From the NCBI GenBank assembly GCA_000708835.1, contig DF236959.1, positions 295,728 through 359,727 on the forward strand: 64,000 bases of DNA, given 5' to 3'. Below, piece by piece: positions 1,491 through 64,000 of the stretch (position 1 is its first letter; every line of letters starts with the position of its first letter). The notes below the pieces were generated by a model, which saw only the letters and a program-made list of their open reading frames with translations, did no database searches and was not told the DNA's origin. The position numbers and the translations under genes were made by a program. Source of the stretch: Klebsormidium nitens (taxonomy: Eukaryota; Plantae; Klebsormidiophyceae).

Positions 1491-1911
1491 AGACATCACA
1501 GTTCTGAACAGCCGACAATACACTGCTTGTTGATATGCAGGGGAACAGAAAGATTCAGCGCCGTCATCAAACCAAAATTTGGCTACCTGCCGAGCCCCTG
1601 CCGAGTTTCGTAAATTGCATGATGCCGCAACAGAAGTTAGTCCTGAGCAGATAGTTATCGCATTCCAACTTCAAAAACGTCACTTCCCCTTCATATTGAG
1701 TGACAAGCAAGGAGCACCTTGAACGTTGTCTCATGTATGTCATTCTGGACACTGGCCTAGGGCAGAGGAACTGCAAATTACTCAAATTAGAAGCCCCGAA
1801 GAACCTGGCATGTTACTCACCTGCCTGGTGTGAATGCCACTTGTGTCCGCTTCAGTTCAGCGCTCAAGGGCTCCCCCAGCGACCTCCTGTAAACCCATCA
1901 AAAGCCCACCG

Positions 1912-1981
1912 CCATCAGCGTTTGTGCATACTGTCGATCTGATGTTGAATCAACCAAAAATCAACACGGAATAAAATCAAC
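1912..1981 (+). repeat. Left terminal inverted repeat
   Basis: ccatcagcgtttgtgcatactgtcgatctgatgttgaatcaaccaaaaatcaacacggaataaaatcaac aligns gaplessly with the reverse complement of 18050-18119. Confidence 0.85.
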
Positions 1982-2090
1982 ACTGGCTTTAACGGCTGAT
2001 CAACGTTGATTAGGAATCAACAACATATAATCAACGGAAATCAACAGTCGCTGTTGATTTTGCTTCATGATTCTCTTTCAACGTCGAATC
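1943..2090. repeat. Left subterminal array of ATCAAC/GTTGAT motifs
   Basis: At least 7 (a/g)atcaac copies, including the perfect 12 bp palindrome atcaacgttgat near 2000-2010. Short subterminal repeats are typical of CACTA elements. Confidence 0.7.
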
Positions 2091-2421
2091 ATGTACGTAT
2101 CAAGAAGGGCAGGGATACTTGATCAGGCGTGTGATCTGTGTTGATTGAGCACCATATTAATGGAGCTTGTACAATGCGAACATGGGATGTAGAGATGCAA
2201 ACTCATTGCATGTGATTGATTCGGGCACGCATCCATCAGACTCAGCGGTCTAAACACGCAACCCATTGAACGATTATTTGGAAACAATTTCATATCAGAT
2301 GATGTCAATCGTAAGAACAAGTAGTTCTAGACACCAAGTGAGAGTTCCTACTGCTGGCTACTACGTCTCATCAGAACTGGTGACGAATCAGGTCCTTGTA
2401 GTACACAACGAGCTAACGTGA

Positions 2422-5400
2422 CTAATCAAACCACTGTTCGGGGTTTGCTGCGGTGTCGTTGGCTTGCTCAGACGAACCATTCTCACTTGCTCCCGCTGCT
2501 GCCATTGCCTTCGCGCGCTCTGCTGCACGGCTCTGAAGCCTCATCGGGCAGACCGTAGGGTCTTCCGGTGCCACAACAACTACGAAAGCACTGACTCGGG
2601 GCTCTCCGGCTAGAGCCTCCTCGCGTAAGTGTAGCATCGTCGCCTCCTGCTTCTCCAAACGCTTGATGCCCCGGAATTGCAGCTCCAGCTGCGTCGAAGT
2701 GAGAGGTCGTTTTCAGCTTTATGCTATCGTGCACCATCAGCATTGGTAGTGGTATCTTCTGAGTCTGAGCTAGACAGGTCCCAACTACTCAATTAGCTTT
2801 TGAGTAGACATTTGGGCATGGTGGAGCTGTTGATAGTGCTGTAAGGATCTAACCGTCCAGAGAATAAGGTGCTTGCACAACAGAAATCGTTAACTCCTCT
2901 CGAGCTGCTCGAACTTCTGCCAAATCACTGGCCTAATGAAGTCGAAGCGCTTCCGCATTCACCACAGCAATCCGCCTGGAATCCGAAAGTTTGCGGGTCT
3001 GACCTTTGATTATATGAAAATGGCTTTCATTTCATCGAAGTCAAAGACAAAGTGTTCTGACGAATTGACCAAGTCGCTCAGAGGTTCGCATCTAGCAATT
3101 AAGCAACTCAATTGGAGTGGCCCACTGGATAGGGTTCGAAAGTACGTACCACAACCTCGACCAATGCAAGCCGAGCCAATGTCACGACAAGCTGATCTGG
3201 TACAGGTTGATGGTCAACGTCCACGCCACACGCCTTCGCCAAGACTGTACGGAAGCGCAGGTCACCGTAGGCGTCCGTACCTGCCTTGCGATAGGCGTCA
3301 CCTGTCGACATGCATGAGGATGATCGAGGATGTCAGCAAGACGTCCCAGGACTTGTCAGATGTCTCGAAACAGTTTGACCAGGATACAAGGACCATTCAC
3401 GTGCGGGACGACGGAGATGCAGCTGCTCAGACAAAGCTGGACATCTTGTCGTGGACATGGATCCCATAATTGCTCTGATCAGGTCTCAACAACCGAGAAA
3501 CCTGATTGTCACTGTATCAAAGTTCGCAAGAGGGGAATACTGGGCCTCCCGAGCTGTTGGGTTCAAAAAGCAGATTCTGACGTACAGCCAGTACAGGGCT
3601 TGCAAAGAACAGCATATGACATTTATGATATAGGGCACATTTACAGAAAACTTACCTGCGAGAAGCTCGGTGGTAATCTTTGACCAGTCTTCAGTCCCAG
3701 TCGCAGGCAAGTCGTACCACTTTGTTGCTGCTCCCCGAATAGTTGACACCGCTTGGCCTCTCTTCATGCGGAACTTGTCCATTTGGTGAGCTTGGATGAA
3801 GTCTTCGTATAGCTCGTCGAAGAGATCCTCCTGCTCTGGGTCTGGTCCCACTCGAAGTGCGAGCTTGGTGTTGCTCCTCATGAGCTCGGAGTCAGCAACT
3901 CCAGATGTGAGCATGCTTAGGTTGACAGCATCGGAGGCGAGGAGCTGCGGGAAAATTTACAGTGAGTAGGGCGCCTCGTTTTCAACAAATGCTAAACGAC
4001 AAAGCTTTCAAAATGACCGAGACGAGCCCCATCTGCTGTTCCTTACAAATCGTTGGTCGATCCGGAAAACAAATGGACAACTCGGCAAAGAGCTCACTGG
4101 CTGAAACCCACAACTTGAAAGGAAGACGAACTGCGTACATGTGTCGAACCATCCTCAAAGCCTTCCTCTTTCATCAATGTTGGAACGATAGACTACTGGC
4201 CCGTCATTGGTCTTCCAAGTTATGCATCGGAAAGGTCAGAATGGAAGGGAATCCAAAACATTAGCTGCAGAGCCCCTGATCGTAAAAGAAGCATGTCTAT
4301 GGACCGCACAGAAAAAGCAAAGAGCTAAGTGCACCTGACATGGCACCATACAAAATGTTAGCTGAGATCTCAACCTTACAAATCGAATCGAAAGGTTTAC
4401 TTGTAGCTTGTCGCTGTAGATATGCGCACGCGGCTGCTTACTTTGATTGGGGACTTTGCGGAGCTGAGGAGCTTGGGGTTTGCCTTGAGTTTTTCGAGGG
4501 GCCCAAGCTGATGCTCCGGCACTCCAACCTGCACAGGCAACGTAATCAATGAGTCTTGTTATCTGGTTACGTAGGACAAGACAATACGTTTCTATCTTGT
4601 TGGATTGCGTTCTGCTTTTGTGGGAGGAAATGCAGCTGAATCCGCAAGGAAGAAAGTGCGAGTAAGGCCTAAGCTGTGCTATGAACATCGCCTGCATTGG
4701 AGTTTGCAGAGTGGTACTGATCCAAGTTGGGATAGATAGCAGCTAGCTTGATGACGCAGTCAAATCTAGAAAGAGGTTTTCCGCAGGATGACTACTGAAT
4801 CTGCATTGCTGAGGTTCTCTTCTTGAGCCTTCAGGTTCCTTAATAGATAAGCTGAGCAGAGTTGGATATGCAACATCAACGAGGCGAAGACGAAAACACT
4901 CCAGCTCATTCAGTGATTCTAAATTAGAGGCATGCAAGTGAAAGGGTTTCAGAGTAGATCACATGTTGAGACACCGTCACCGAAGACGTTGCAGGGTCAG
5001 GACTTTGCTGGCTCAATCCTGGTCTTGTCTTCTTGAAGCAGTTTAGGAGCTGAGTCATTGACTTCTCCAGTCTGTCGTTGCGCGCCAGTTGCTCAACCTG
5101 GGCCTGCTGCATTTTCAGGTGCGACATAAGCAAAAGGTTGAGGTCGATACCGGCTTCATTGGAAGCCGCGGAGAGCACCAGGTTAGCTGCGGCACTTCGA
5201 CGGATGTTGCTACAGGACTCTCCACCTGCGACAGAAAACAAAGTAAGAGAGTAAGGACCAGCATTGGATCATCTGGAGCGCTCTCATTACTTGAGACCCC
5301 GCCCGTACATATCAAGTAGTCTGGCCAATTCTGGCAAAACACTTCATCTGCCTATGTTAAAACTCGAGTTTGGCTATCTTCCTGCTTCAAGTAAGCAGCT

Positions 5401-6684
5401 GAACCACCAGATTCAGGGAGATCATTGCATCAGGCATTGCAGGGTGACTAACACAGCCTCTGACTTCCTCATTCAATCCTGACCTTCCTCAAATCCCTTT
5501 CAAGAAACCACGATCACAATTCATTTTCACTTACTCTTCTTATCCTGAACGGGGACGATTGCTCTATCGTTTCCAGCTTTCTTCCTCCTTTTGCGCGGTG
5601 CCTCTTTCCTTGGGATCGCTCCCAACAGTTCAGCGAGGTCGTCCTCGGCAGCATCGCTATCAACCTCACCACCTTGCAGAAACGAAAGAGAGGCATGCTG
5701 TGAGCTGTTTCAGAAGATAGAATGATGTTTCACAGCTTAGTAGGCCTTGAATGCTCTAATATACTTGGATGAAGTGTCCACAAAAATGTATGATATTCTG
5801 CTGAATGCAGCTTGCCTTCTCTGAAAGGTCACCTTCAATAGGGAACTGTATACATGGCGGAAACAAACTATGGCAGCTATCCCAAATGGCATCAAGGTGG
5901 ACGAGACCTGTATAGCTACCAAGACCAGGACTCAGCTAGTGCGCGACGTCAATCTGGTGTTATCCTCCCTTTGACATGTTCCCAGCCTTAATCTCTTGAT
6001 TGCAGGGCTGACTTGCTGCTAAACACTGGCTACTTTGTGGGATCACAAAAAAGCATTGCAGAATCCAATCCATTTGAAATTACAGTTTGAAAGTTGCCTT
6101 ACTCTTTTCGGTATCCTCAGCCTCCTCGGTACCCAGTTCCTTAGCAGCATCCTCCTCCTCCAGGTCATCGTCTCGAAACTATCCGTCTCCTCTTCACCAT
6201 CCTCACCCTCTTTGTATTCGGAACCTGAATGCTCCACCGAAGGCTCTCTGCGTGCCCGTCTGCCTGCGGCCTCAGTGCCGCCAGCATCTACATTCAGCTC
6301 ATCCTCCTCTTCACTTGAATCTTCTGCAAACAAGTTCTGCATCTGCGGCCTGTTCCTTTTGCCATTAGCATTGGCGCTGTCAGGTTGTCCAGCTGCAGCT
6401 GCTATGGCTGCTTTCGCTTTGGCGAGAGCGGCGGGATTCTTACAGTTCTTAGTCAACCATTTTGCGACTTCTCCAGCGTCATCCCCTAGCATGTGTGCAA
6501 GGCGGGCCTCTTCAGTGGTGGCTGATCTCTTAGGCCTTTCTGCCAGAGAAGGAAGCGGACCGCTGTCTTCTTTGTCCTTTGGTAGAGCACCACCACTGGC
6601 TTTGGCCCGCTTGTCGCCAGCGGATGCGGCATCATTCCCTTTCCTCCCTCCACCGCCAGCCATAATTGACCATTCGCTGTGCAA
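2422..6684 (-). CDS. Multi-exon passenger gene of unknown function (basic/acidic low-complexity N-terminus, helical C-terminal part); possibly frameshifted
   Basis: Exon-like blocks bounded by AG/GT: 6684-about 6104 (MAGGGGRKGND...), about 5670-5535 (GEVDSDAAEDDLAELLGAIPRKEAPRKRRKK), about 5226-4980 (MSHLKMQQAQVEQLARNDRLEKSM), about 3940-3655 (EQEDLFDELYEDFIQAHQMDKFRMKRG), about 3300-3145 (DLRFRTVLAKACGVDVD) and about 2688-2422 (LELQFRGIKRLEKQE...NPEQWFD*). Some internal exons are unresolved; no domain recognised. Confidence 0.6.
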
Positions 6685-7656
6685 GGCGACGTGGAAAAGT
6701 AAGTCTTACTTACCTAGGTAGAAAGGTCTTGTCTTTTTCAATTCCTCACGTCATTGCGGCAAGCACTGGCAACCTAGCAACCTCACTCAGTACCCAAGTC
6801 AGACTCGGGGTCACTGGTCAGTGGTCACGGGTCAGGCTGACCTTCTTTTTGAATGCGTTTCGTACTTGCTGACTCAAACGTTTGCCGTCGATCTTCAATC
6901 TGTGCGATCGAAGGGTCCTTTCACGGGCTGCATGCTTCAATATAAAGAAACTAACAGCGTCGATGTACGGCTTCTCATCGCCTTTGCCGTTCGATGTACT
7001 TTTCCCGCCACTTCCAACTGTAGATTACCGCCGTAAGATTATCTGAGGCGACAATCTTGAGTCGTCCGATGCACCTGAAGGAAGGGCAGTTCTCCGAAAC
7101 GCTCTTCATCGTCCATCAGAGGCACAAAGAATGATCGGAAGGCTGACATTCATTCACGTCCTAATCGTGTGAGTGGAAGAACATGATCTCGGTATAGTTC
7201 AAGTCTCAAGAAGGTCCAGTCTATCAATACCTATAGCGGGTGCAAGCGAAGCATGCCAATGGCGTCAATCTGGTAATGGATGGCACCCTTGAAGGCATCT
7301 TGCCAACCTAGGTTGCGCAGCAAGATTGTAGTTGAAACATCTAATGGAAGCCTCTTTTGGTCCAAGAAAGGTGGATTATTGTTTTTTCCTTTGTATCTTT
7401 CAGCACTTCTTGGTGGTAATGGGGATATGCTGACATTCCGTGAGAACACCAGTGACCAGGTGTTGACTAGGGTTGTACACAGTCTGGACAGAGTGAGAGG
7501 TTGAAGCTTCCACAAAAAGCGGAGCACACTCAGGCTGAACACGCTGTAAGCTCAGGGTGGCAGATGTGCAGCCACAGCTGCAGTGGGCTTTGAAGGTCAC
7601 GCCTCACACCATAGCAGGGGTTTGTGTACTGGCAGGATCAGTCTTAGATGTTGCAG

Positions 7657-10369
7657 CTGCAGATGGAGAGCAGCGAGTTGGGTGTTGGTGTCCGCCTTAT
7701 TTGCAAGGCAGAATCAACGAGCACCTGGGAGTTTGAGGAGCCGCTGTACTCATCTCTGCCGCCTCTGCATTCAGTAGATATGCCCCGCGAGCTTGTCAGG
7801 GTAAACGCGCCGGCATCCTTAGTTGAGCCTCTTCATGTTTACCTTCATGCGGCGCTGTCAAAAGAGAAGGACTCAGCGGGCAAGTGGCGGGCCCTGTTCA
7901 TGAGATATTACCAATCAGAGCGAAAGCTTTGGGATTCTGTGTTTCTTCGATTTGAATCGCAGTATCGACTCAAGCAGATTGAAGGCATTTTTCAGAAGCT
8001 GAAGCGAGGGAACATTGCAAAGAAGCCGGTTGTTCGAGTCACCGCGGTGGTGGCCTTGCCGCGAGCTCGTGGTTCTGGCAGCAGGTGAGTTTCCGGGACC
8101 CAAAACTCTAATAAGGGGTCTTCCGCAGGCTTTTGTTGCCCATCATTGCTGAAGCCTCACGGTGGTCATTTGAAAGGTATTGTTCTAGAGAGGCGTGGAA
8201 CCCTTGCCAACCCAGGTTTAAGTGAGCGTGCCTCTTTCAATAAACAGACTTTACTACCGAGTGTCCGTTAAGAACCTGCTCAAGGTAGACTTGCTGCAGA
8301 CAATGGCGCCGCCGAGTATGCCATCCACTTTGGATTTGCACCGTTCATGTTTGCAGGCTTTAGGAAAATCCTCACACTTGACTACTCACCAATCTTGTGT
8401 CGATTGCTCTACATGTTCATAGATCAGAGAAGTCTGCTGAGAGTCACTGTCCTTGCTGGTCGATTTGAGATGGATTGTGTTGAAGCTCAGAGTATTGCCG
8501 GATCAGGTCCAGTGTAATCACGTACATTGCCCATTCTGCAGGGACGGTCGCACAGGGACAGAGGTGGAGAGGTCGGGCGAGCAAAGCGCAGGTGGGGCTC
8601 TCGAAGTTGTGCAGACGGGGAATGTAAGATCTGCCGACGACAACGGCACACAAGGGCCAGGTCGGGAAAGGGAAAGATCAGGGGCAAAGGCAGAAGCAGC
8701 GTTTGCAAATGGGGAAGTTGGCAGTTTAGGAAAGCCAGGAGGTGCTGATGCGCGGAGTGGGGGAATACCTCCTCAGGGTCTAAGAGAGACGGATATGGAC
8801 GGGGCAACAAAAGGCGAGAGCGTGGGGCAGGCAGCGAAGAGCGGCAGTGGGGGCTGCAATAGCGCGGTTGCAAGCACTTCAAGCTGTCAAGCTGCCTCCG
8901 GCATCAAGGGAGGGGTGAACGGCGCCGCAGCATCCTTCGAGACGGTGCCAAATGGAACAGTGGACAAGGTATGTATGCAGTTACACTTGATCTGGGAGTT
9001 CCCTTGCTTGAGAATCACAGACTGACAAGGCAGGATTCTGCCTTGCATGTCCGGCTGAAAACCTGCTAGTTGTGTCTTGCCTATGAAGATTTCGATTGTC
9101 AATTGGGAGCTCGTGTTCCTTCCTGTTGTGTTGTGTCACAAGCCAATTGCTGCGCAGATTCGATCACGCATTGTGAGTTTGTTTGGTGTGGTATTGCTGT
9201 TGAGAAACAGAGAACAGGTTTTTTGTCTCGTTGTGTTTGCAAGCTGGTTCTGTCCACATCCCTTGCTTTCAATTCAATATCCGTTTTGAACATATTCGAA
9301 AGCTCGCTGCGCAATCAGGGCAATCCAAAGTTGGCCACTGAGGATTCCCTACAAGCGAATATTGAGCACGCCAGTCTTGATCAGTCACGATCCAGTCATA
9401 CCTCAGCTCAGACTGCAGAGAAGTAATGTTCATCAACTCTTTGTTGACCACACCTTTGTGCTGCAGTCCCTGCGCATGCTGACGATTGAGGAGCGAGAGA
9501 TGCTCCAACTGCCGGACCTGGCTGACGCTGTGGGGAGTGGGTCGTATGGAACGGTATATGAAGTGTTGGTTGACGGGGGGTCTTCTTGGGCTCGCGTCTT
9601 TCCCGATCGTGTTGGGACCAGGGTTGCTGTAAAAGAATATCGCCCTAAGGGCCTAGGTACTGCGTACACAGTCGAAAACGTTTCTTATGAGGTCATTCTA
9701 GCATCAGCTTTCTCTCACAACAATGTCGTTAAGCCTTTCGCAGTGTGCATCAGCGGTCCAGCTTTGCCTCTCGCTTTCTTTCCTTACTTCAATCAGGGAT
9801 CTTTAGGATCTGTCCTTCGAAAACGGGATGATCGCAGCTTGAAAAAGCCCCTCGCTAAGCTGATGTGGACAGCTAGGGTTCTCGTAGGGGCGTGCTTGGA
9901 TCTTTTGAAGGCAATCCAGCACGTTCATGGTAAGGGCATTGTACATAATGACCTGACTCCCAACAATATCCTCGTTCACTTTGACGAACGTGAGTTGTCA
10001 ATAAAACTGGCTGTGCACGACTTTGGTTTGGCGAGTAGGCTTGTCGACCGCAAGAGTCACCGAAGTTTCAAGTCCGTCAAAGAGGAGGAGCAGTATGCTA
10101 AGAGGTACAGGTACGTTGCTCGAGAGCTCATCTTAGGGAGCTGCTTTTCAAAGGCAAGCGACATGTATGCTGTAGGTCTTCTGTTGGAGGATATTCTAGG
10201 GCTCGATCGGGCTTCCGTCAGAAAGGAATTGTCGGAATCAAGAGATTGGAGCGAGGTGCTTCTTTCATTAGCTTCGTTGGCCGAAAAAGTCCCTTCAAAG
10301 AGGCCGACTTGCGATCAGGTACTTCATGCTTTTGAGACATTGTGGCGAGTATATCAGTATAGGAACTGA
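7657..10369 (+). CDS. Spliced Ser/Thr protein kinase (non-RD, HND catalytic loop) with an uncharacterised N-terminal domain; 5' exons unresolved
   Basis: Phase-consistent exons 7657-8084, 8542-8968, 9467-10369. Kinase motifs: GSGSYG, VAVK, alpha-C Glu (SYEV), HNDLTPNNILV, HDFG, YVARE (APE equivalent), SDMYAVG. Confidence 0.9.
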
Positions 10370-11956
10370 AAGACGAAAGCTAATGTACATTAACGAACTA
10401 AGAACATTGTTCGTAAGTGCATGGTCCGACGTCACTGAGCTCGAATGGAGTCTTGCACACCCGCCTGTGGAGTTCCGTTCTTGATTGTGCCAGATCGAAT
10501 ATTGCATGTGCCGGCATGCAGTAACTTCGATTACACAAGATGTATATGCAACATGATGAACATGGGGTGCGGTTGAGGTATATGCCGGGCCGACAATTTT
10601 CAACCGTCTCGTAAGCACTGCAAATTCTATATGTGGGCCCGGTCCTCTAACAACCTTAATCAAGCTCTTCAATTGAGACGTTAATGTGACGCTTGTATTC
10701 TATGGCCCGATAAAAGCTTAACGCTTTTAGAGCTAGACGATCCGCGCACTCATTCAACCGTCACTGAGTCAAATCCTACTCCTACATGAACTGTGTATTA
10801 ACCAATGTGTTCGTCTATAATGACATGTCGAGCAGGCGCCGCCGCGTCTGTCGCATGAGCACACCGACATGTTCGAAATTTAACTCCATCCAATAGGCCC
10901 CGTGTATGATACTTACCATCATGAGTTGGCGCGGCATCAGAGGTCCGACTTTATTGCACGCCACCCGATGACCCTAATTAGCGCGTGCCCCTAGCGCGTT
11001 GCGTCATGTGTGCGGTGTGTTGTATCGCTGAGTTTGGCAAATCAATGTTTCGTGAATTTCATGCTGCTTGACTCTCCTGCCAGACATGGCTGACCTAGTA
11101 CGAAAATGTATCATTAACATGATTGCACGAAATATGTTAAATCTTCAAATGGTCTCCGAATGTACAGGCGCCACATTGCCGGACCGGTTGAGTTTGATTC
11201 CAAGGACTTGAATGTTTCTGCGGTCCGCGGGCCACGCCTCACCGTCAGCACTGCAACTGAGTTATCACCGCATCATGCACTTGTACTGCCAGTGCCGCCA
11301 TAACACACGGTACGTATGAGGCTATGATGCGGCATATATATAACTATTCAGACAATTGTAACTTGTGAATGTGCATTGAAGTGAAATTCGAGCTAGCCTT
11401 GAAAGTTTGACTTACTCGCGGACCGACATGTCACGGCGAACGGTAATTTTAAATTCGCATGAACGCGTTGGAAAGAATTCCACATATGTCGGTTCAAAGG
11501 ATGAAGCGCACTGCATGCTGCTCGCACATCTGTACTTTGTATCGAACCCACACTGACAAGCATGACATTGATATATGTTTGGACTCGGTACAGCGTCTTC
11601 GCGAATCTTCGACGACTCGGATTTACATGCATATGATGTCGGGCCCCGGGCTCAAGCAGTCGGCACAATTGCATTGATGTTATTCTCATGCCTGGCCATG
11701 GCATCGTTGTCCGGTCACTAGCACTGTTTTGAACCGGGTTGTGAATGGCACAACAATCATGATATCAGGATCATGAGTACAAAGCTTGATATGGCTGCGA
11801 GCCCCAAAACGTGTGTCGGAATACGTTGAAACTGACAACTCGGGTAAGCTACAATAATTATGATACAGGAACATCCATCCGGTCGAGCGCTCTCGAGTCG
11901 GATGCATCAAGGGCTAGCTGAATATACTTGATCTATTGTTTCCTAGCGACTATGCC

Positions 11957-14900
11957 CTACACTAGACGGGTTTCATTAACATAAAACATACCTTCGTTGT
12001 TTGGATCCGGGAGGATGTGCTCAAGCCGTTTTATTGTTTGAAGGCCTATGACGTCATACCGAACCTGCTCAACACCCCCGGGGCCGTTAACCATCTCCCA
12101 TTTTAGACGGATGCTCCTGGTCCCGTCTTGTGGGCCCGTTTTCTGATACCACTTCACGAAAGCATAGGCGCGCTTCTGTCCCCGGTGATCGACACAGGAA
12201 AACAACAAACGAAGTTGCGCATACCAGTCAGTCCGTTCCAGTCGCCCTCGCCGTTCCGACCCGACACCATCCACAATCACATTGCTGAAAACGGGCCGCT
12301 GGTTCTGCCCGAAGCATGGGTTCGCCCGAGCCAACTCCGTCTTCAAACTGCCGTCAGGCTGCCGCGCTCTTGCAATCGCAAGCGTCTTGTGTCGGATAAC
12401 CTGCACAAAATGAGGCAGACCCGTTCGACTTCGCATCTTCGCAGTTTGACACTCGTCAGCAATGACTCTACTATATCTTGACAGTTTTGCCGAGGGCTTT
12501 GGCGAATGCAGAAGCGAAAGCAAGCAGCCTCTTGGCAACGTTCACCTTATGCTTAAGCAAAATTCATCAAGGGAAGCTTCCGATTTAGAATTTCAAGCAT
12601 TGCTGATTAAAGGATCCAATCAACGCATCCCGGAGCATCCTGGTGACTTTCTTGGGGCTTTCTTTCAATTGGACGTTTGCGCGATTCAGATCCAGATTTC
12701 TACGGAAACGTTGCGAGCAGCCATAAGGTCAGAAGAGGCCGCATCAATCCTCGGTCCATACTTCTTCTCACCTTGGCGTCTTGAACGGTGGGAAGATTCG
12801 CGAGCAAAGCTCGCGTGCCTCTGGGATTCCCTCCGAGGTGCGCGCGAAGGACGCGCTCGAGATGGACCAGCTCGGGCTGCGCGAGAAGGGCGGGATCTCG
12901 ATTGCCGTCCCGCAGGGACTGCCTGGAGAGACGGAAGAGACGGAGAGGGCCACCTTTCACGCTCAGCAGGTTGGTCTTCTGGTCTCTAGCCTGCAAGCAA
13001 AAGCGAAACAACTTTCAATAAGGTTCTCTGTAACGATGCTAAGCAGCCACAAACAGTTAGCTTGTTGTCCGGGGCAGGTAGATACGATAGAAGGTTCACG
13101 CAAGGACGACGCCGAGGAGGACAGTGCGTGGATTGCAACAAGCAGAGCCTTTCTTGAGAGAGTACTCGAGCCATCGGAGCGTGTCAGGACAGTCGGTTCA
13201 TGATTATGCAATTGAAGGCCCCCTGACTGAGCGCTTCCTGCAAACGCTGAGGCACAAACGCTGACCGGCAGAGAGCTTTGACCGGTATCAGTCGGTTTAA
13301 GCGATCCGAAAACCCCCTTCGAAACACAACGAGAACGAAACCAAAAGAAAGAGAAGTAAACGGACAAACGACAGATGAATCTAAGAAGAGGGCGGCACTT
13401 GCAAACTTAACGTGATGCAAAGCGCCAAGGATGCAAAGCGCCCAGATGCAAATGAATTACACCTCACCCGCTTGCGGAGAGCTGTCTCCTTCCGAGTCGG
13501 AACGAAGTAGTCCTTGCCCGCTTTGCGCAGGGCGAGACGGTCGGTCACATGCTTGACCATTTGCAGCTGCATATGGTTTTTGTTGGAAGCTCTGAAGGGG
13601 TTCTTTGCCGTCCTCTTGTGACTCGACTCGTAATTATCGGCAGAGTACTCCCCGGGAAGACCTTTGAGACTGACCGACTCGGTAGAATGCGCGTTGGTGT
13701 GTACCTTGGAGGTACCCCAACCCGAAGCCTGGTAAGGCAAAATCCTCTTCATCTTAGCGAGGACCTTATCCCAATCAGCGTCTACCTTCGCCAAGGACGC
13801 ATCGGTGTGACCTCGGCTTTTGTGCCGGACAGCAAAGTCAAGGTACACATCAGCGAAATCGCGAAAGAGGGGTGTTATCTCGTCACGACCGTTGGGCAGT
13901 GTAAAAACTCCCACGACGGCATAGACGGCTACCTGCAAGAAAAACGGACAATAATTTGTCTCCTCAGTTTGAGCGGGTGAAAAGCTCTGTGAGTCGGCGA
14001 CCAATCAAACAGGGACCGCCTGCCCTATGTTTCTGCTTTTCACAAAAGCATGCGTCCAGGTGTGCTTTGCAGGCTTTTACTTTGTTTAAGGCGCGCTTGC
14101 AACCAGATAGCCAGCTGTCCTTTATAGGTAACAGCAATTTGACTCTGAGGTAACAGCAGCCCGAACTGGAGTCTGGCCAAAGAGAATCAAGGATGTTGCC
14201 TGCACAGAAGTGAGGGGTGCAAGTTGAAGGATAAGTGCGGCAGCAAAATCGAACAAAGGTACCAGAAACAGCAAGTGAAAAGGGAAAGATAAGTCTAACA
14301 AAAGTACACAAGAAGAATCGGCCGCAGCGGCACGTGCAATCAGATGTGCGAAGCAGGAGTTGTCGAAACCCACCGACAAACTGTGCCGATGCTCGAAGGC
14401 GGTTACGAAAGACGAACCGCCCAGGAAGTCGATGTTGGGCAAACGGAGACCAGGGTGCGAGTTCCGGAAGGAGAGAAAGCGCTTGTTCGCTAAAGCCACG
14501 CGCTTATTGCCCTCCTTGGCTCCGAACTTGTCCTTAGCGTACTCGCCCACGAGCTCGAACAACATGGGTATTACCCCGTGGTCCAGCTGCAAATACAAAA
14601 GCACCGTGCTCTTCGCCCTCTCTTGAACGTTTTTAGGAACCAATTGTGCGACTCAAACACGGATCGATAGCAGAACACGCTTCTTACAGGACGAGTTCTT
14701 GAAGCTCCAACCGAGTTCAACATTTGCCTCACCTCGTAGTGCTTTCGAAACAGATGGATGGGCCCAGCGTATGACTAAGGAAGCCAGAAAAGCTAAAACC
14801 GGAATCAGATGCCGCAGTGCTTACGGTGCGTACCTGGTGCATGATCTCTGGTAGTATGGATCGATAAACGTTCCCGGATTTTGTGTTCCCCCCCTTCCAG

Positions 14901-17540
14901 TCCCATAAAGCATTCTGCAGAATCACGTTATAAGGTAAATAGCATGGATGCATGATCAGATTCGCTGAAGCTTCGATGGCTTTCTAGGACCGGAAAGCTT
15001 TCCCAACTGGAACCTGGCATCTAGTTCGGAAGACACTTCGCACGACCAGGGACTGCCAACTTATCTTTCTCAAGGAGATCGCATAAAAGCAGTCATGTGT
15101 GTAGAGAAAGGAGGCGCATCTCACCTCAACCGGGTTCACTGACCAGCCTTTGACCAATGACTCAATCACCGCATTACAGCCTCCCTGTGCATGGAGCTTC
15201 ACAACCTGATCGTAGATCTGCTTCATCCTCTTTTCTGTCCGAAGTTCGGCGCGTCTGCCTGCAGCTAGATCATCAAGGTCGCAGGCCAGCACGAGACACG
15301 TGTGACAAGGGCAGTTAGTCTTGTTGCCACTCTTTGTACCTGCAGCAACACAGCCTTCTTGCCAGTCAGTTACGACGGCGTATATCATAGGCCAAACTGT
15401 TGTCTTGACTCCGTCTGCATCCTCAACCTCCATGCCCCTGCACAAAAATAAGTTCAGTCAGAAGATGCTCTTGATCTGGTGGTAGTCCCTCGTTACCCAT
15501 TGAAACGACAGGAAGAGAACAGAATGTTTGCAAGAGTCTAGGTGCAAGTCAACTCTTCCCTACTCCCGCCTGCCAGTGCTCATGACGTGAAAGCATTGGC
15601 TTAGACAATCTGACTCAGTGATTCTCAATCCAAGACATGGATCTAAGACAGCAAACCTTACGTCAAAGTGTAAAGTTTCAAGCGCTCCAAAATTCTCCGA
15701 TAGGAGTCGTGCCATATCTGGAGCTGCCGTAAGCGGAGCGCCTCTGAGCCTTCCGAGAGACCCGACTCTGGGCGTGGTGCCACATATGGAATGTAACCCA
15801 CAAGAACCCAACCAGAGAGCTTCCCCCTGAGCTCCTTGGGAATGTTGGCAAGGCTCAAGATCACTGGGCGCACTTTGAGTCGCCCACTCAAACTGAGCGG
15901 TGTCCCGTCGCTATACAGTATGAGCGCCAGCACTGTGTCTGACGCTGGGATCAAATTCTGCGATGGCAAGCACAGAATATGTTGACTTCCTCGCGTCTGG
16001 CGAAACATCTTTGTCTTGTACTAGTCCTGACTCCTAACACTGCTTTTGTGAATCAAGGAAATACGCGACTCAAGAAAACACAGAGTGTGACAGCGCTACT
16101 GCACGGACTCTGGCTGTGAACTGCTGTGAGAATCTAGATCTCGGAGGAAGTGCGGAAGTGATTATATCTTGAAACACACCCACATAAACCCAGAATTAAG
16201 GGCTGGAGCGCTCACCTGCATGTCATGCCACCAGACGCCGGTGTGCGCCTCTTTATACCGGCGCTCCCCATTCTTGATCCGCAGAATCTTGGGCTTCAAG
16301 ATCAATTTTCCAGCGTGCGCCGGATCCTTCCACAAACTCAGAACAGCAGTATACGCATCGCAGTAGTCGAGGAAGAGGTCTTGTCCATCCCCGGGGCCCG
16401 CTAGGTTGGCTCTAGACCAACCTTCCTGCATACCACATTGCAACCATTAGATCAGTCACAGCTTTGCGAGCTGACACTAGCAGCTTCCAACACCCCACGG
16501 GTCAGGACAATGATGACTGGGAGATGAGTACGCAGAGTGCGCAGACAATGAGACGTACCCAGCTGAGCAAAGAAACAAACTGAATCAGTAAACTCTGTTT
16601 GCATTCCTAGCTGATTGTGTAACTCGCTGAAAAAGTGATGTGGTTGCACCAGCCAAAGATTAAGGTGAAGGGCATGGCAGTACAGGTAGAACCGACAGGA
16701 AGTCAGCCAGGGGGGCAAGAGAAGTCCTCTGAACATTGAGGCTTTTGCTGTGAGACAGTAATCACAAAATGTAGCTCAATTTTTACTCTGCCATCAAAGG
16801 CGTTCCCTTGTCTTGCCAGGCCTACAAGCTGCCAAAACAGAGTCAGGCTCACAAGAGATAGTATCACGTCGGGGCCTCACCGGTCTTGGGAGCGTGTCAA
16901 TATGCTTCTGCACATCTTTGTCATTCTTCAATCCAGGAATCTCAGCAAAGCTGAGCAGCCAGTTCTGGTCCTTCCGAGAGAGCCCTCTGCCCCCATTGCA
17001 GTTTTTTATGAATGCTACAACCTCTTGCCTTTTCTCTTCCGCTGGATCTTCAGAAGCAAAGGTGCTGGACCCGTCACAAGGAGGAATCTGTTCGAACCGC
17101 GCCCCAACTTGCTGACCTAAGGCAGATGTCCTTGGTTCCGGAGATATGAGGTGGTGGTATGAAGTGTCTGCTTCTTCGGAGTTACCTGTCCCAGCTGCAT
17201 CTTGAGTTACAATATGAGGAGGAGTTAGAGGATCTGGGATGGGCGACAAGGGGTGGGAGGAAGAATCGAAGGCGTTGAACTGCCGGAGCGGCGATGATGG
17301 TGGAACTTGTGTCGACGTACTAGTTGCAGTGATAGATGCACTAGATCTCACAGGAATGCAGCCCCCCTCCTTTCGCTGGTGGTTGGTTAGCTGCTGATAG
17401 GAAACAAACTTGCTCTGACACTTACGGCACACAATCCTGCCACCAAGGGGACTGCCACGCCCGTTAGCGGGGGACCGTGCAACAGCTCGTCTTCTGGGAG
17501 AGAGGTGTGGAAAGAGGTTATCAATAAAATGGTTGACCAT
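11957..17540 (-). CDS. Plavaka-type (CACTA/Mirage/Chapaev superfamily) DDE transposase, 9 exons, about 966 aa, with N-terminal C2H2-like zinc finger
   Basis: Exons 17540-16881, 16425-16216, 15957-15662, 15437-15125, 14914-14834, 14586-14374, 13932-13468, 12990-12772, 12400-11957, all GT-AG and phase-consistent with no stops. Motifs: CRKC-x12-H, EAHTGVWW, ILYSDGT (D1), VTDWQEG (D2), CHTC (C-x2-C), EIMHQLDHG ([M/L]H), KVHTNAH (H-x3-H), YESSHKRTAK (E), and C-terminal AQLRLLF...AFVKWY...YDVI...FYVN. Confidence 0.9.
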
Positions 17541-17914
17541 GTTCAAGCTGAACAAAGCTAATATCACAAGCAGTCCAGCTCCCAGCTAGCTGCGCAGCTC
17601 TGGAGGCTGGCCTTTCTTTCAAGCTAGTACTTCTAAGCTAGGAGTCCTCCAGTGATGAACCTTGCCAAAGTTCTGCCACTTGCGCAATGCTGACCGTCGC
17701 ACGGCCCCGCGTTGCTACTTTCCCACAGTTTCCCTCAAGGCTACAGCATTGCTATTAGAGAAGAGTTGTCTCGTTCCTTCTAGAAGCAATGAGGCTAATT
17801 TGCAAGCTGAGTCCCAGGGACAGCAGTATGGTCACAGGAGCTTGTTGTGACTCCGAAGAATCTCGAGATATCAGCTGTGCTGGTGCAGTCCCGCCACGCT
17901 GTCAGAATTAAGTA

Positions 17915-18100
17915 CGTCGATTAGCTGATACAGATATTTTCAAGTTCAGTTCAACGGGCTTCCCAACCGTTGATAAACTTTCACGGTCGAATCAAGAGTC
18001 AAAGTGCTGGTCGATATACAATCCGCGTTGAATCGACACTGGACCCGCCGTTGAAATTATTTCTTGTTGATTTGTTGATGATTCGACAAGTAATCGACAA
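17915..18100. repeat. Right subterminal array of GTTGA(T)/TCGA motifs
   Basis: Dense gttgat, gttgaa, tcaac, tcgac and gtcga motifs mirroring the left end. Confidence 0.65.
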
Positions 18101-18119
18101 GATCCCAAAACGCTGATGG
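18050..18119 (-). repeat. Right terminal inverted repeat
   Basis: Reverse complement reads ccatcagcgttttgggatcttgtcgattacttgtcgaatcatcaacaaatcaacaagaaataatttcaac; 53/70 identical to the left TIR. Confidence 0.85.
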
Positions 18120-19179
18120 CCGCTTCTGCCTCAGACTCTGAGTCAAACAGGACATGAGCCAGCTGCCACTTGCAAATAATGCTGCGCCAGTGCTGGACAG
18201 TGGGGTTGCTGTACCTGGCTACACAGCTGTCGGTACATGGTCACTGGTCATATCAACGACGAACGTGTGAATCCGTTTCAGAACAGCTTTCCACCCGGTA
18301 GGAAACTTAGGTGGCGGTCGATCGTGCGGCATGCTGAAGCCGGACATGCGGGCCACAGCCTCGGGCCTGATCACTGATTGGCCTTAGGCACAAAGCTACA
18401 TCGACGGCTAATACGTTCTGACCTTATAGGCACTAACTTCCGGGCTGAGTCCAATCATTTGTGCTTGGGCGTGCATAATGGTGCCAGTGCCCAGCGCCCG
18501 GCACAGCCCCTACCCCGCGCACCTCAACCGGGGCTCAACCCTGCCTCCAACGATACCAAGATTGGCGACTTCTTGGCATATACTCCAACAAGCTCTTCAA
18601 CATTGATGGCATCACCGACCTTGGCCCGGGAAAGCGGGAGTACATCGGGCTGTCCACTGGAGTTTGCACGGTGATGCAGGAACCGAGCGAGGCGGACGCA
18701 AACGCGGTGTACCAGTGCTATACGTCGCTGCAGTTCCAGTCGGGGAAGTACGCGCCGAGCGCGATCTTCCTAGCGAGCGAGTTCCAGAAAGGTCTTGCTC
18801 GTATCTCTTCCGTTTGAAAAGTCGGTTTGCCAATCAATGACACTATGAAGTGAACAGTTAGTCGTTTTGCACTTGGTTAAACGCTGCGTATCAGACCGTT
18901 GTTGAATCTGACCCCGGGACGGACCAATTCTTTTCTTGGCGCGGCATCAGTTTGGGCATGAGCTGAGATACGATTCCGGCCTTTCTGCCCTGACAATGAT
19001 ACTCAGCTCGCTAAGTGCTTCGCACACTGGACCTGATTCAGAATCTATACGCATCGCAACATAGGCAATAGGCCTTTTGCATCTTTTCCTGCTTTGCACG
19101 GCGAATAAGCTCACCACACAAATCGATCTTCCACTGACTCTTCATTAACGTCAATGGCTGCAGTCGTCTTCAGTGACAG

Positions 19180-61765: not shown

Positions 61766-63014
61766 CATGCTGCTGTCGCAAGGGTTGAGTTGGAATGAGC
61801 AGCTTCGGTAGAACGGGTCCAAAGTCGGATGTGGCAACGGAGATGGGTGAAAGGGGGTGTCGAGAGTTGGCAGACGAAAGGGGAGCGGGGAGTGGTTGGA
61901 CAGACGTCGCGTTGGGAGGACATCGAGGCGGTTGTTTCCAAGAGCGAAGAAACTGAGACAACACTTTAACAACCTGACCTTTTAGGAAGGCCGAGACAGC
62001 AGCTTGGGGGCAGGGTTAAAGTCAGAGGGGAAGTGGGAGGCTACTGGGGGGACTGTGGGCTGGGCGCTGGTGGATGGAAGGGGGAACCGCCGGGTGTTGC
62101 GACTTTTGTGAAGTCGGAGTCGAAAGTTGGGGCTGGGGCGGACGGAACAGAGGGGGCGGACGAGGGCTTTGAAATTTATAGGTCTGCTGTGAGTTTAGAC
62201 GCGGAGGTGATCGACGGAGCCAAAGAACGGAAGATGAACGTTGGGGAGATTGATTTTTTCGTCATGATGGTTTCAAACGAGGCGGGGTTGGTATGCAGGG
62301 ACTTCGTGTTTTGACCGACAGAGCAAACAGATGTGAATCTTCGCTTGTGCTAGAAGGAAGAAGGAAATAATTGGCAATCAAGTGGCATGTGGGTCCAAAG
62401 GGAAGACGCATCCTTATTGGAATGTCAAGATCTGGTTATGTCTTGGATTCGGTTGATCTCTGACTATACGGAAGGCACTGATTCAGAATGCCAGCGACAT
62501 CCAACCACAGACTTTCGTTTAGGGCTTAGCTAGGCAGCCAGCGCAGGGTGTTACCTTAGTATAGACTTTAGTTTATATCCTGTACCGTAGCGCATGCCCG
62601 CCGAAGTGCGGCGTCATTGAGAAGGGAATTTGAAATCCTTTTAGAAGAGGGTGGCGATCATCTGTAGTTACATACAACAGACCGCCATAGTTGCTTACAT
62701 ACCTACATTAGCAGGCTAATAAATGATCTAGAGATACTAGTCAGAATAATCACTTGGATGCTGAGAGTGGAAGTTCTTCAACGTGGTTTATGCAGGAGAC
62801 TCTAGCTAACTGTAGGACATTTCAAGATTGCTTTGGAGCTAATCATTCTGGGAATCTGTCGCAAAGGGGTCGGACGAGCCTGTTTGTCCAATCGACGTGT
62901 GTGGTGCGTGACATGGCCGACGAAAGCCTCACACTTAAGGCTTGGTGCAGCCTAGGTCACTGGCGCCCGCGGCCCATTAATCGAAGGACTAGCTCATGGC
63001 CGCGTTCACACAAG

Positions 63015-63957
63015 NNNNNNNNNNNNNNNNNNNNNNNNNNNNNNNNNNNNNNNNNNNNNNNNNNNNNNNNNNNNNNNNNNNNNNNNNNNNNNNNNNNNNN
63101 NNNNNNNNNNNNNNNNNNNNNNNNNNNNNNNNNNNNNNNNNNNNNNNNNNNNNNNNNNNNNNNNNNNNNNNNNNNNNNNNNNNNNNNNNNNNNNNNNNNN
63201 NNNNNNNNNNNNNNNNNNNNNNNNNNNNNNNNNNNNNNNNNNNNNNNNNNNNNNNNNNNNNNNNNNNNNNNNNNNNNNNNNNNNNNNNNNNNNNNNNNNN
63301 NNNNNNNNNNNNNNNNNNNNNNNNNNNNNNNNNNNNNNNNNNNNNNNNNNNNNNNNNNNNNNNNNNNNNNNNNNNNNNNNNNNNNNNNNNNNNNNNNNNN
63401 NNNNNNNNNNNNNNNNNNNNNNNNNNNNNNNNNNNNNNNNNNNNNNNNNNNNNNNNNNNNNNNNNNNNNNNNNNNNNNNNNNNNNNNNNNNNNNNNNNNN
63501 NNNNNNNNNNNNNNNNNNNNNNNNNNNNNNNNNNNNNNNNNNNNNNNNNNNNNNNNNNNNNNNNNNNNNNNNNNNNNNNNNNNNNNNNNNNNNNNNNNNN
63601 NNNNNNNNNNNNNNNNNNNNNNNNNNNNNNNNNNNNNNNNNNNNNNNNNNNNNNNNNNNNNNNNNNNNNNNNNNNNNNNNNNNNNNNNNNNNNNNNNNNN
63701 NNNNNNNNNNNNNNNNNNNNNNNNNNNNNNNNNNNNNNNNNNNNNNNNNNNNNNNNNNNNNNNNNNNNNNNNNNNNNNNNNNNNNNNNNNNNNNNNNNNN
63801 NNNNNNNNNNNNNNNNNNNNNNNNNNNNNNNNNNNNNNNNNNNNNNNNNNNNNNNNNNNNNNNNNNNNNNNNNNNNNNNNNNNNNNNNNNNNNNNNNNNN
63901 NNNNNNNNNNNNNNNNNNNNNNNNNNNNNNNNNNNNNNNNNNNNNNNNNNNNNNNNN
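63015..63957. other. Assembly gap (N run)
   Basis: Run of N. Confidence 1.
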
Positions 63958-64000
63958 CAATAGCCCGGGTCGTTATACAGAGCTTGAGCACAAGCCTGGC

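Follow-up and report, generated by a model that had tools for sequence, protein, structure and literature searches.

The locus described here raises the question of why a gene for a eukaryotic-type protein kinase lies inside a DNA transposon, and whether it does anything for the element that carries it. The gene was found in a stretch of 64,000 nucleotides of the streptophyte alga Klebsormidium nitens (contig DF236959.1), which is called the window below. An initial annotation had described it as a transposon-borne non-RD kinase with an N-terminal domain that could not be assigned. The answer that we favour is that a three-exon kinase gene within a PlavakaB transposon probably serves as an accessory that the element lineage needs to propagate. 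The structural part of this statement is near certain, and the gene is mobile together with the element, as two insertions of it are on record; that the element needs the kinase to spread is suggested by the pattern of substitutions in its genes.

The kinase gene is carried by a mobile PlavakaB element

The gene lies in a 16,206-bp DNA transposon of the PlavakaB type, which is apparently intact. A metagenome contig of 16,472 bp (L001) is 97.3% identical to the window across exactly 1913-18118, and its flanks are unrelated to those of the window copy. The same element is therefore on record at two insertion sites, and this near-identical copy at a different site demonstrates its mobility. The element starts with CATCAGCGTTT and ends with AAACGCTGATG, the right end being the reverse complement of CATCAGCGTTT, and is bordered by a 2-bp target site duplication (TSD), which is GC in the window (1911-1912 and 18119-18120) and TG in L001. 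PlavakaB elements are defined by the termini CATCA..TGATG and a TSD of 2-3 bp (Kojima, 2025; PMC12730594). Judged by its termini, its TSD and its Plavaka transposase domain, the element fits PlavakaB. Besides the kinase gene it contains the following features:

1913..18118, no strand: whole PlavakaB-type DNA transposon (limits from the L001 alignment, the terminal inverted repeats and the TSD)
1913..1923, plus strand: left terminal inverted repeat (CATCAGCGTTT; terminus comparison)
18108..18118, minus strand: right terminal inverted repeat (reverse complement of CATCAGCGTTT; terminus comparison)
11957..17567, minus strand: multi-exon Plavaka transposase, convergent with the kinase gene (PF18759 matches; nine exon blocks conserved with L003)
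2425..6684 (approximate), minus strand: third gene, ORF-B, divergent from the kinase gene (exon blocks conserved with L003)

The inverted ends at 1913 and 18118 enclose both the kinase gene and the transposase. The placement of the kinase within terminal inverted repeats and converging on the transposase, as the initial annotation had it, is thus confirmed by the repeats, the TSD and the two insertion sites.

A diverged relative, L003, is present in the K. nitens NIES-2285 assembly (record DF237105.1). It shares the right end with the window element, and three genes are common to both in identical order; in the DNA alignment of the two only exon-like blocks are conserved. The transposase matches PF18759 at 15658-16008 (44.5 bits) and 14984-15445 (29.1 bits, with a cut-off of 26.3), and its homologue in L003 is annotated as a 907-aa Plavaka protein. 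ORF-B has no Pfam match; its L003 homologue is annotated as a protein of 530 aa. The transposase of L001 is frameshifted (L001:10147-12218) relative to the window and L003, and the window copy looks more intact than L001.

Just inside both ends of the element (1924-2000 and 18040-18107) short subterminal repeats with TGTCGAT and AATCAACA motifs were noted, which resemble the transposase-binding repeats of CACTA elements. The window as a whole is eukaryotic in character, with about 50% GC and intron-rich genes; the low GC at its end is due to a run of N at 63014-64000 (assembly gap). Plavaka elements have been reported in streptophyte algae before, in the Spirogyra genome paper (PMC13519894).

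Structure of the kinase gene

The kinase gene consists of three exons at 7648-10369 on the plus strand, which are joined in frame through GT..AG introns:

7648..8084, plus strand: exon 1, orphan N-terminal alpha/beta domain (open reading frame (ORF) 7648-8088; GT donor at 8085)
8542..8968, plus strand: exon 2, Gly/Ser/Ala-rich linker, probably disordered (acceptor AG 8540-8541, donor GT 8969; the frame fits exons 1 and 3)
9467..10369, plus strand: exon 3, non-RD protein kinase domain with the stop codon (Pfam Pkinase; conserved acceptor)

The predicted product of about 585 aa comprises the N-terminal domain, the Gly/Ser/Ala linker and the protein kinase domain; searches and folding were done exon by exon. 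Exon 1 ends at the donor AG/gtgagt with two bases carried over, exon 2 is bounded by the acceptor ctgcag/G and the donor AAG/gtatgt, and exon 3 follows the acceptor gctgcag/TCC. Two independent lines of evidence support this join. The acceptor of the kinase exon (a pyrimidine tract and CAG/TCN CTN CGN ATG CTN AC) is found at the same codon in five loci, with proteins down to about 50% identity. In addition, the public K. nitens gene model KFL_001560290 (P0003), which lies on a diverged copy, links the N-terminal block, the linker and the kinase.

The in-frame connection of kinase, linker and N-terminal block proposed in the initial annotation is upheld by the GT..AG splicing and by this gene model, and the N-terminal peptide quoted there was found in ORF 7648-8088 (plus strand). 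The start had to be corrected, as position 7657 is not an ATG. ATG codons are present at 7648 and 7663; the upstream one at 7648 is absent in L003, and 7663 (MESS...) is the conserved start. No Pfam match was obtained for the linker exon.

Between the divergent ORF-B and kinase genes a block of about 190 bp (7242-7435) with a CCAAT-like motif is 77% conserved with L003. The block may act as promoter for both genes, or it may be exon 1 of ORF-B (minus-strand ORF 7231-7542).

The kinase is constrained like the transposase

The ratio of non-synonymous to synonymous substitution rates (dN/dS) was estimated after Nei-Gojobori for the exon-like blocks of the window and L003:

Kinase exon: dN/dS 0.13-0.15, dS about 0.52
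N-terminal domain exon: dN/dS 0.25-0.29, dS about 0.37, 84% amino acid identity to L003
Linker exon: dN/dS 0.45 (with indels), dS 0.58, 53% amino acid identity to L003
Transposase, nine blocks: dN/dS 0.143, dS 0.62
Third gene (ORF-B): dN/dS 0.32, dS 0.55

Non-synonymous changes are significantly fewer than expected in the kinase exon (p = 9e-22) as well as in the N-terminal domain (p = 5e-5; binomial). Compared with the more distant L002, dN/dS is about 0.18-0.20 with saturated dS. As judged from these estimates, purifying selection on the kinase is as strong as on the transposase between diverged elements (dS of about 0.5).

A divergent non-RD kinase domain

The ORF at 9362-10369 (plus strand) matches Pfam Pkinase (PF00069) with 82.2 bits and PK_Tyr_Ser-Thr (PF07714) with 82.5 bits, the cut-offs being 31.7 and 23.1 bits, respectively. 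The following motifs were located, all on the plus strand:

9533-9550: GSGSYG, Gly-rich loop (motif reading)
9623..9637: VAVKE with the beta3 lysine (family alignment and motif reading)
9944..9967: HNDLTPNN catalytic loop, non-RD, Thr in place of the loop Lys, Asp and Asn kept (family alignment)
10019-10027: DFG (motif reading)
10115-10126: VARE (motif reading)
10019..10126: activation segment from DFG to ARE, 36 residues (motif reading)

The alphaC Glu is also present (YEVIL). In an alignment of nine family members the Gly-rich loop, the beta3 Lys, the alphaC Glu, the catalytic Asp and Asn and the DFG Asp are kept in seven, and by this alignment the window kinase retains all residues needed for phosphotransfer. 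The motif coordinates and the Pfam matches bear out the initial annotation in that the catalytic residues are present, with HND for HRD and ARE for APE. Its account was incomplete in two respects: the change of the loop Lys to Thr had been missed, and ARE occurs only in the window, L001, L003 and L002, which form one clade, while more distant members have APE, the ancestral state.

The non-RD state is family-wide, as H-N/C-D is found in each of the eight aligned members in which the Asp is preserved, and the decayed L008 has HNN. The Lys of HRDLKxxN is absent from every member. In distant members an R or K stands four residues past the Asp (DLxxR/KN), as in tyrosine kinases; in the window clade this position is Asn. 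Two copies look decayed from their motifs, L004 with an internal stop, NNFG for DFG and a damaged catalytic loop, and L008 with TNFG besides its HNN.

The best matches in the PDB are tyrosine kinases (TK) and tyrosine-kinase-like (TKL) kinases (MET, ROS, DDR1, FGFR1, JAK2, MLK1, SOBIR1), with 45 bits for single sequences, 64-69 bits by profile and about 25% identity. The scores are uniformly low and no single kinase family stands out. Among the Pfam matches Alpha_kinase does not occur; the only family listed besides Pkinase and PK_Tyr_Ser-Thr is APH, whose weak match (16.6 bits) stays below the cut-off of 23.2. The word-index search among 5.8 billion proteins yielded only five relatives, and outside the family itself none came from an annotated host gene. 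A search with the full-length model P0003 returned only itself and P0001, and a metagenome scan with the kinase profile gave only generic kinases of 25-32% identity. By these comparisons the kinase is very divergent, resembling TK and TKL kinases, and no known family can be named for it.

An N-terminal domain without a fold match

The N-terminal domain comprises about 140-145 aa and is coded by exon 1. Its AlphaFold 2 model, based on a 21-sequence alignment, reached a predicted local distance difference test score (pLDDT) of 83.2 and a predicted template modelling score (pTM) of 0.78, and all five models agree. In the predicted topology, three strands and a helix are followed by two short strands and then by three helices, with one more strand at the end. 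According to the model the domain is mixed alpha/beta, and the earlier description as a helical block is not supported, since six strands are predicted next to three to four helices.

The statement that the domain cannot be assigned was found to be correct for both sequence and fold libraries. There was no match in Pfam, in PDB sequences or in the protein atlas. The Foldseek check that the initial annotation had proposed for exon 1 was run with the AlphaFold 2 model and gave no fold match, the best E value against the PDB being 0.7-0.8. The best hit against BFVD had an E value of 0.14, and VIA-align against 48,161 chains reached a best Z of 3.4, which is below the usual level even for unmatched models. 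The modelled fold is thus without a match in the structure libraries searched. Two candidate assignments were rejected. Many weak Foldseek rows pointed to a kinase N-lobe remnant or an E2/RWD fold, but VIA-align gave no such chain at Z of at least 2, and the wide search had its maximum at Z 3.4. For a helix-turn-helix DNA-binding reading of residues 57-125, the homeodomain and trihelix rows of about Z 3 are at noise level.

A search of 1.84 billion representatives with a profile of the domain yielded 24 hits. About 17 of these are real; they come from soil or unidentified assemblies and are all short ORFs of the size of an exon. Bacterial repeat proteins account for the long hits, which align in many short stretches and were read as spurious; a metagenome scan with the profile found no further copies. 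On every contig that is long enough (the window, L001-L004 and L006-L009) a kinase exon lies 1.2-2.4 kb downstream of the N-terminal domain on the same strand. Read from these contigs, the combination of N-terminal domain and kinase forms a small family of its own. A Lys/Arg-rich patch that closes the last long helix is conserved across the family, and it is possibly a nuclear-localisation or nucleic-acid-contact site.

Surroundings of the distant family members

A multi-exon gene shared by three loci, here called gene X, adjoins the kinase:

L002:7592-11693, minus strand: gene X
L004:538-3266, plus strand: gene X
L005:2495-4628, minus strand: gene X

Gene X has the motifs D-(19)-CxxC and H-(5)-H-x-E; L004 and L005, both of which look decayed, no longer have the cysteines and the Glu of these motifs. 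In the protein atlas its features are nearest to the RAG1 core (score 0.96), a placement without confirmation from Pfam or PDB sequence searches, and a comparison of gene X with the Plavaka exon by hhalign was negative. L006 and L009 have intact kinase motifs and no recognisable transposase in the flanks examined, and the kinase gene of L006 is located 7 kb from an SNF2-type gene. A search for terminal inverted repeats in the other loci gave nothing above chance.

Further observations concern single loci. A second shared multi-exon gene without a Pfam match, gene Y, accompanies the kinase in L002 (24-1572, plus strand) and L006 (11293-12581, minus strand), with different position and orientation in the two. 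In L008 direct repeats of about 400 bp (9096-9503 and 14463-14859), 97% identical and 5.36 kb apart, flank the decayed N-terminal domain and kinase gene; they could be a tandem duplication or a long terminal repeat-like structure. The 411-aa ORFs in the window and in L004 are unrelated, and their same length is coincidental.

What the kinase may do for the element

In the reading that we favour, the kinase would be a helper protein at the level of the element, required by the element lineage for its propagation. Its most likely site of action would be the nucleus, with the N-terminal domain supplying the targeting. Substrates could be the element's own proteins (transposase, ORF-B) or host chromatin and silencing factors. 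Non-RD kinases are usually not regulated by activation-loop phosphorylation, and because this kinase is non-RD it would be active without depending on it.

Several observations weigh against this reading. Between the window and L001 the kinase gene shows 4 synonymous and 12 non-synonymous differences, a neutral ratio. No Plavaka transposase was detected in the flanks examined of L002, L004-L006, L008 and L009 (tblastx, phmmer, Pfam with E up to 10), which leaves room for a host origin or for host copies of the family. The kinase tree has long branches and no resolved order, and for this reason no direction of transfer is claimed. Finally, the loss of both the catalytic-loop Lys and the Pro of APE could mean weak or no catalysis. 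As to the first point, in the usual transposon picture the propagating lineage is under selection and single insertions decay, so that the neutral ratio of the youngest copies may be explained by decay of individual insertions after landing. The initial annotation had proposed dN/dS among copies as a check and had named neutral evolution of copies, together with lack of expression, as an outcome that would speak against it. The youngest pair does evolve neutrally, but since the deep comparison shows strong constraint (0.15 for the kinase, 0.14 for the transposase), its neutrality does not, on these substitution data, overturn that annotation.

The same neutrality would also agree with the kinase being a passive passenger, i.e., a host gene of an alga-specific family that was captured by Plavaka and gives no help to the element, with the constraint coming from a host-level or pleiotropic benefit or carried over from an active lineage. 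Gene capture by CACTA-type elements is common, and the motif-intact L006 and L009, without a recognisable transposase nearby and in the case of L006 near the SNF2-type gene, would suit such an origin. We nevertheless regard it as unlikely, as the constraint equals that of the transposase at dS of about 0.5 between two elements that have kept all three genes in order, no close host paralogue was found in the word-index searches, and the kinases of L002, L004 and L005 adjoin another transposase-like gene. No host paralogue turned up, and between diverged subfamilies the kinase is held as tightly as the transposase; both points support the view that it is not a simple recent capture. A different objection concerns catalysis itself. 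The protein could be a pseudokinase or scaffold that binds ATP or partners without phosphorylation and acts as an adaptor, for example bridging the transposase and the element ends like TnpA-type proteins. HND for HRD, Thr for the loop Lys, ARE for APE, the long activation segment of 36 residues and a Pfam score that is low for a kinase (82 bits) would agree with this. It is quite unlikely in our view, because seven of the nine members retain the beta3 Lys, the alphaC Glu, the catalytic Asp and Asn, the DFG Asp and the Gly-rich loop, and exactly these residues are lost in copies that are otherwise decaying (L004 with its stop codon, L008). Moreover, some atypical active kinases such as RIO and Bud32 also lack the catalytic-loop Lys.

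The kinase could also be a toxin-like or addiction effector that harms cells losing or silencing the element, or that manipulates host signalling at the cost of the host. The precedent for this is a general one, bacterial selfish elements with toxic kinases, and nothing in the data points to a toxin; as neither an antidote-like partner nor a secretion signal is present, and Pfam and the PDB show no resemblance to known families of toxin kinases, it is very improbable. Going beyond the accessory role that we favour, one may tentatively imagine, though it seems rather doubtful, that the orphan domain and the non-RD kinase are an old transposon-only module exchanged among CMC-clade DNA transposons of streptophyte algae (Plavaka here, RAG1-core-like in L002, L004 and L005), which would phosphorylate host chromatin or silencing proteins or the transposase to license transposition. 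If true, this would be a new kind of counter-defence or self-regulation in transposons, built from a protein kinase and a new fold, and it would parallel the exchange of TET/JBP genes among fungal transposons.

Cut-and-paste transposons are usually thought to need the transposase alone. A kinase that is constrained like the transposase would show clearly that a eukaryotic transposon can bring along a signalling enzyme of its own, and it could offer a handle on the communication between element and host chromatin or on the regulation of the element's own enzyme. The N-terminal domain, which is compact, confidently modelled and of a fold unmatched in the structure libraries searched, is a good target for structure determination.

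Comparison with known systems

Non-transposase proteins that aid transposition or counter silencing are found in CACTA or Mutator-type elements of plants, such as TnpA of En/Spm and VANC of VANDAL. For the kinase as accessory protein we propose a functional analogy to these. There is no sequence or fold similarity to them, and TnpA and VANC are DNA-binding or anti-silencing factors, not enzymes of the kinase fold. With the non-RD kinases of plants (SOBIR1/BIK1-type) and animals the kinase shares the absence of the Arg before the catalytic Asp. The distant family members share the TK-like D-L-x-x-R/K-N catalytic loop with TK/TKL kinases; in difference to these, no receptor or known regulatory domain is present, and in the window clade both the Lys and the Arg of the catalytic loop are missing. 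In the literature searched, no report was found in which Plavaka elements of a streptophyte alga carry a conserved kinase of the eukaryotic type joined to an orphan domain.

A kinase gene in a DNA transposon is mentioned, without analysis, for the IS3EU transposons of rust fungi, which carry an alpha-kinase gene (PMC12730594, section 4.1). Like the element described here, they keep the kinase gene opposite in orientation to the transposase; the kinase there is an alpha-kinase and not a eukaryotic-type protein kinase as here, and transposon superfamily and host kingdom differ. Closest to the present element are the PlavakaB elements of fungi, which according to Iyer et al. (2014), as cited in PMC12730594, carry a TET/JBP dioxygenase as cargo. 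Both have a transposase of the PF18759 family, the termini CATCA..TGATG, a TSD of 2-3 bp and an enzyme gene that travels with the transposase. Different here are the streptophyte alga as host, the cargo, which consists of a eukaryotic-type kinase with an orphan N-terminal domain, and the additional third gene. With the K. nitens element, the cargo-carrying PlavakaB elements are extended from fungi to the plant lineage.

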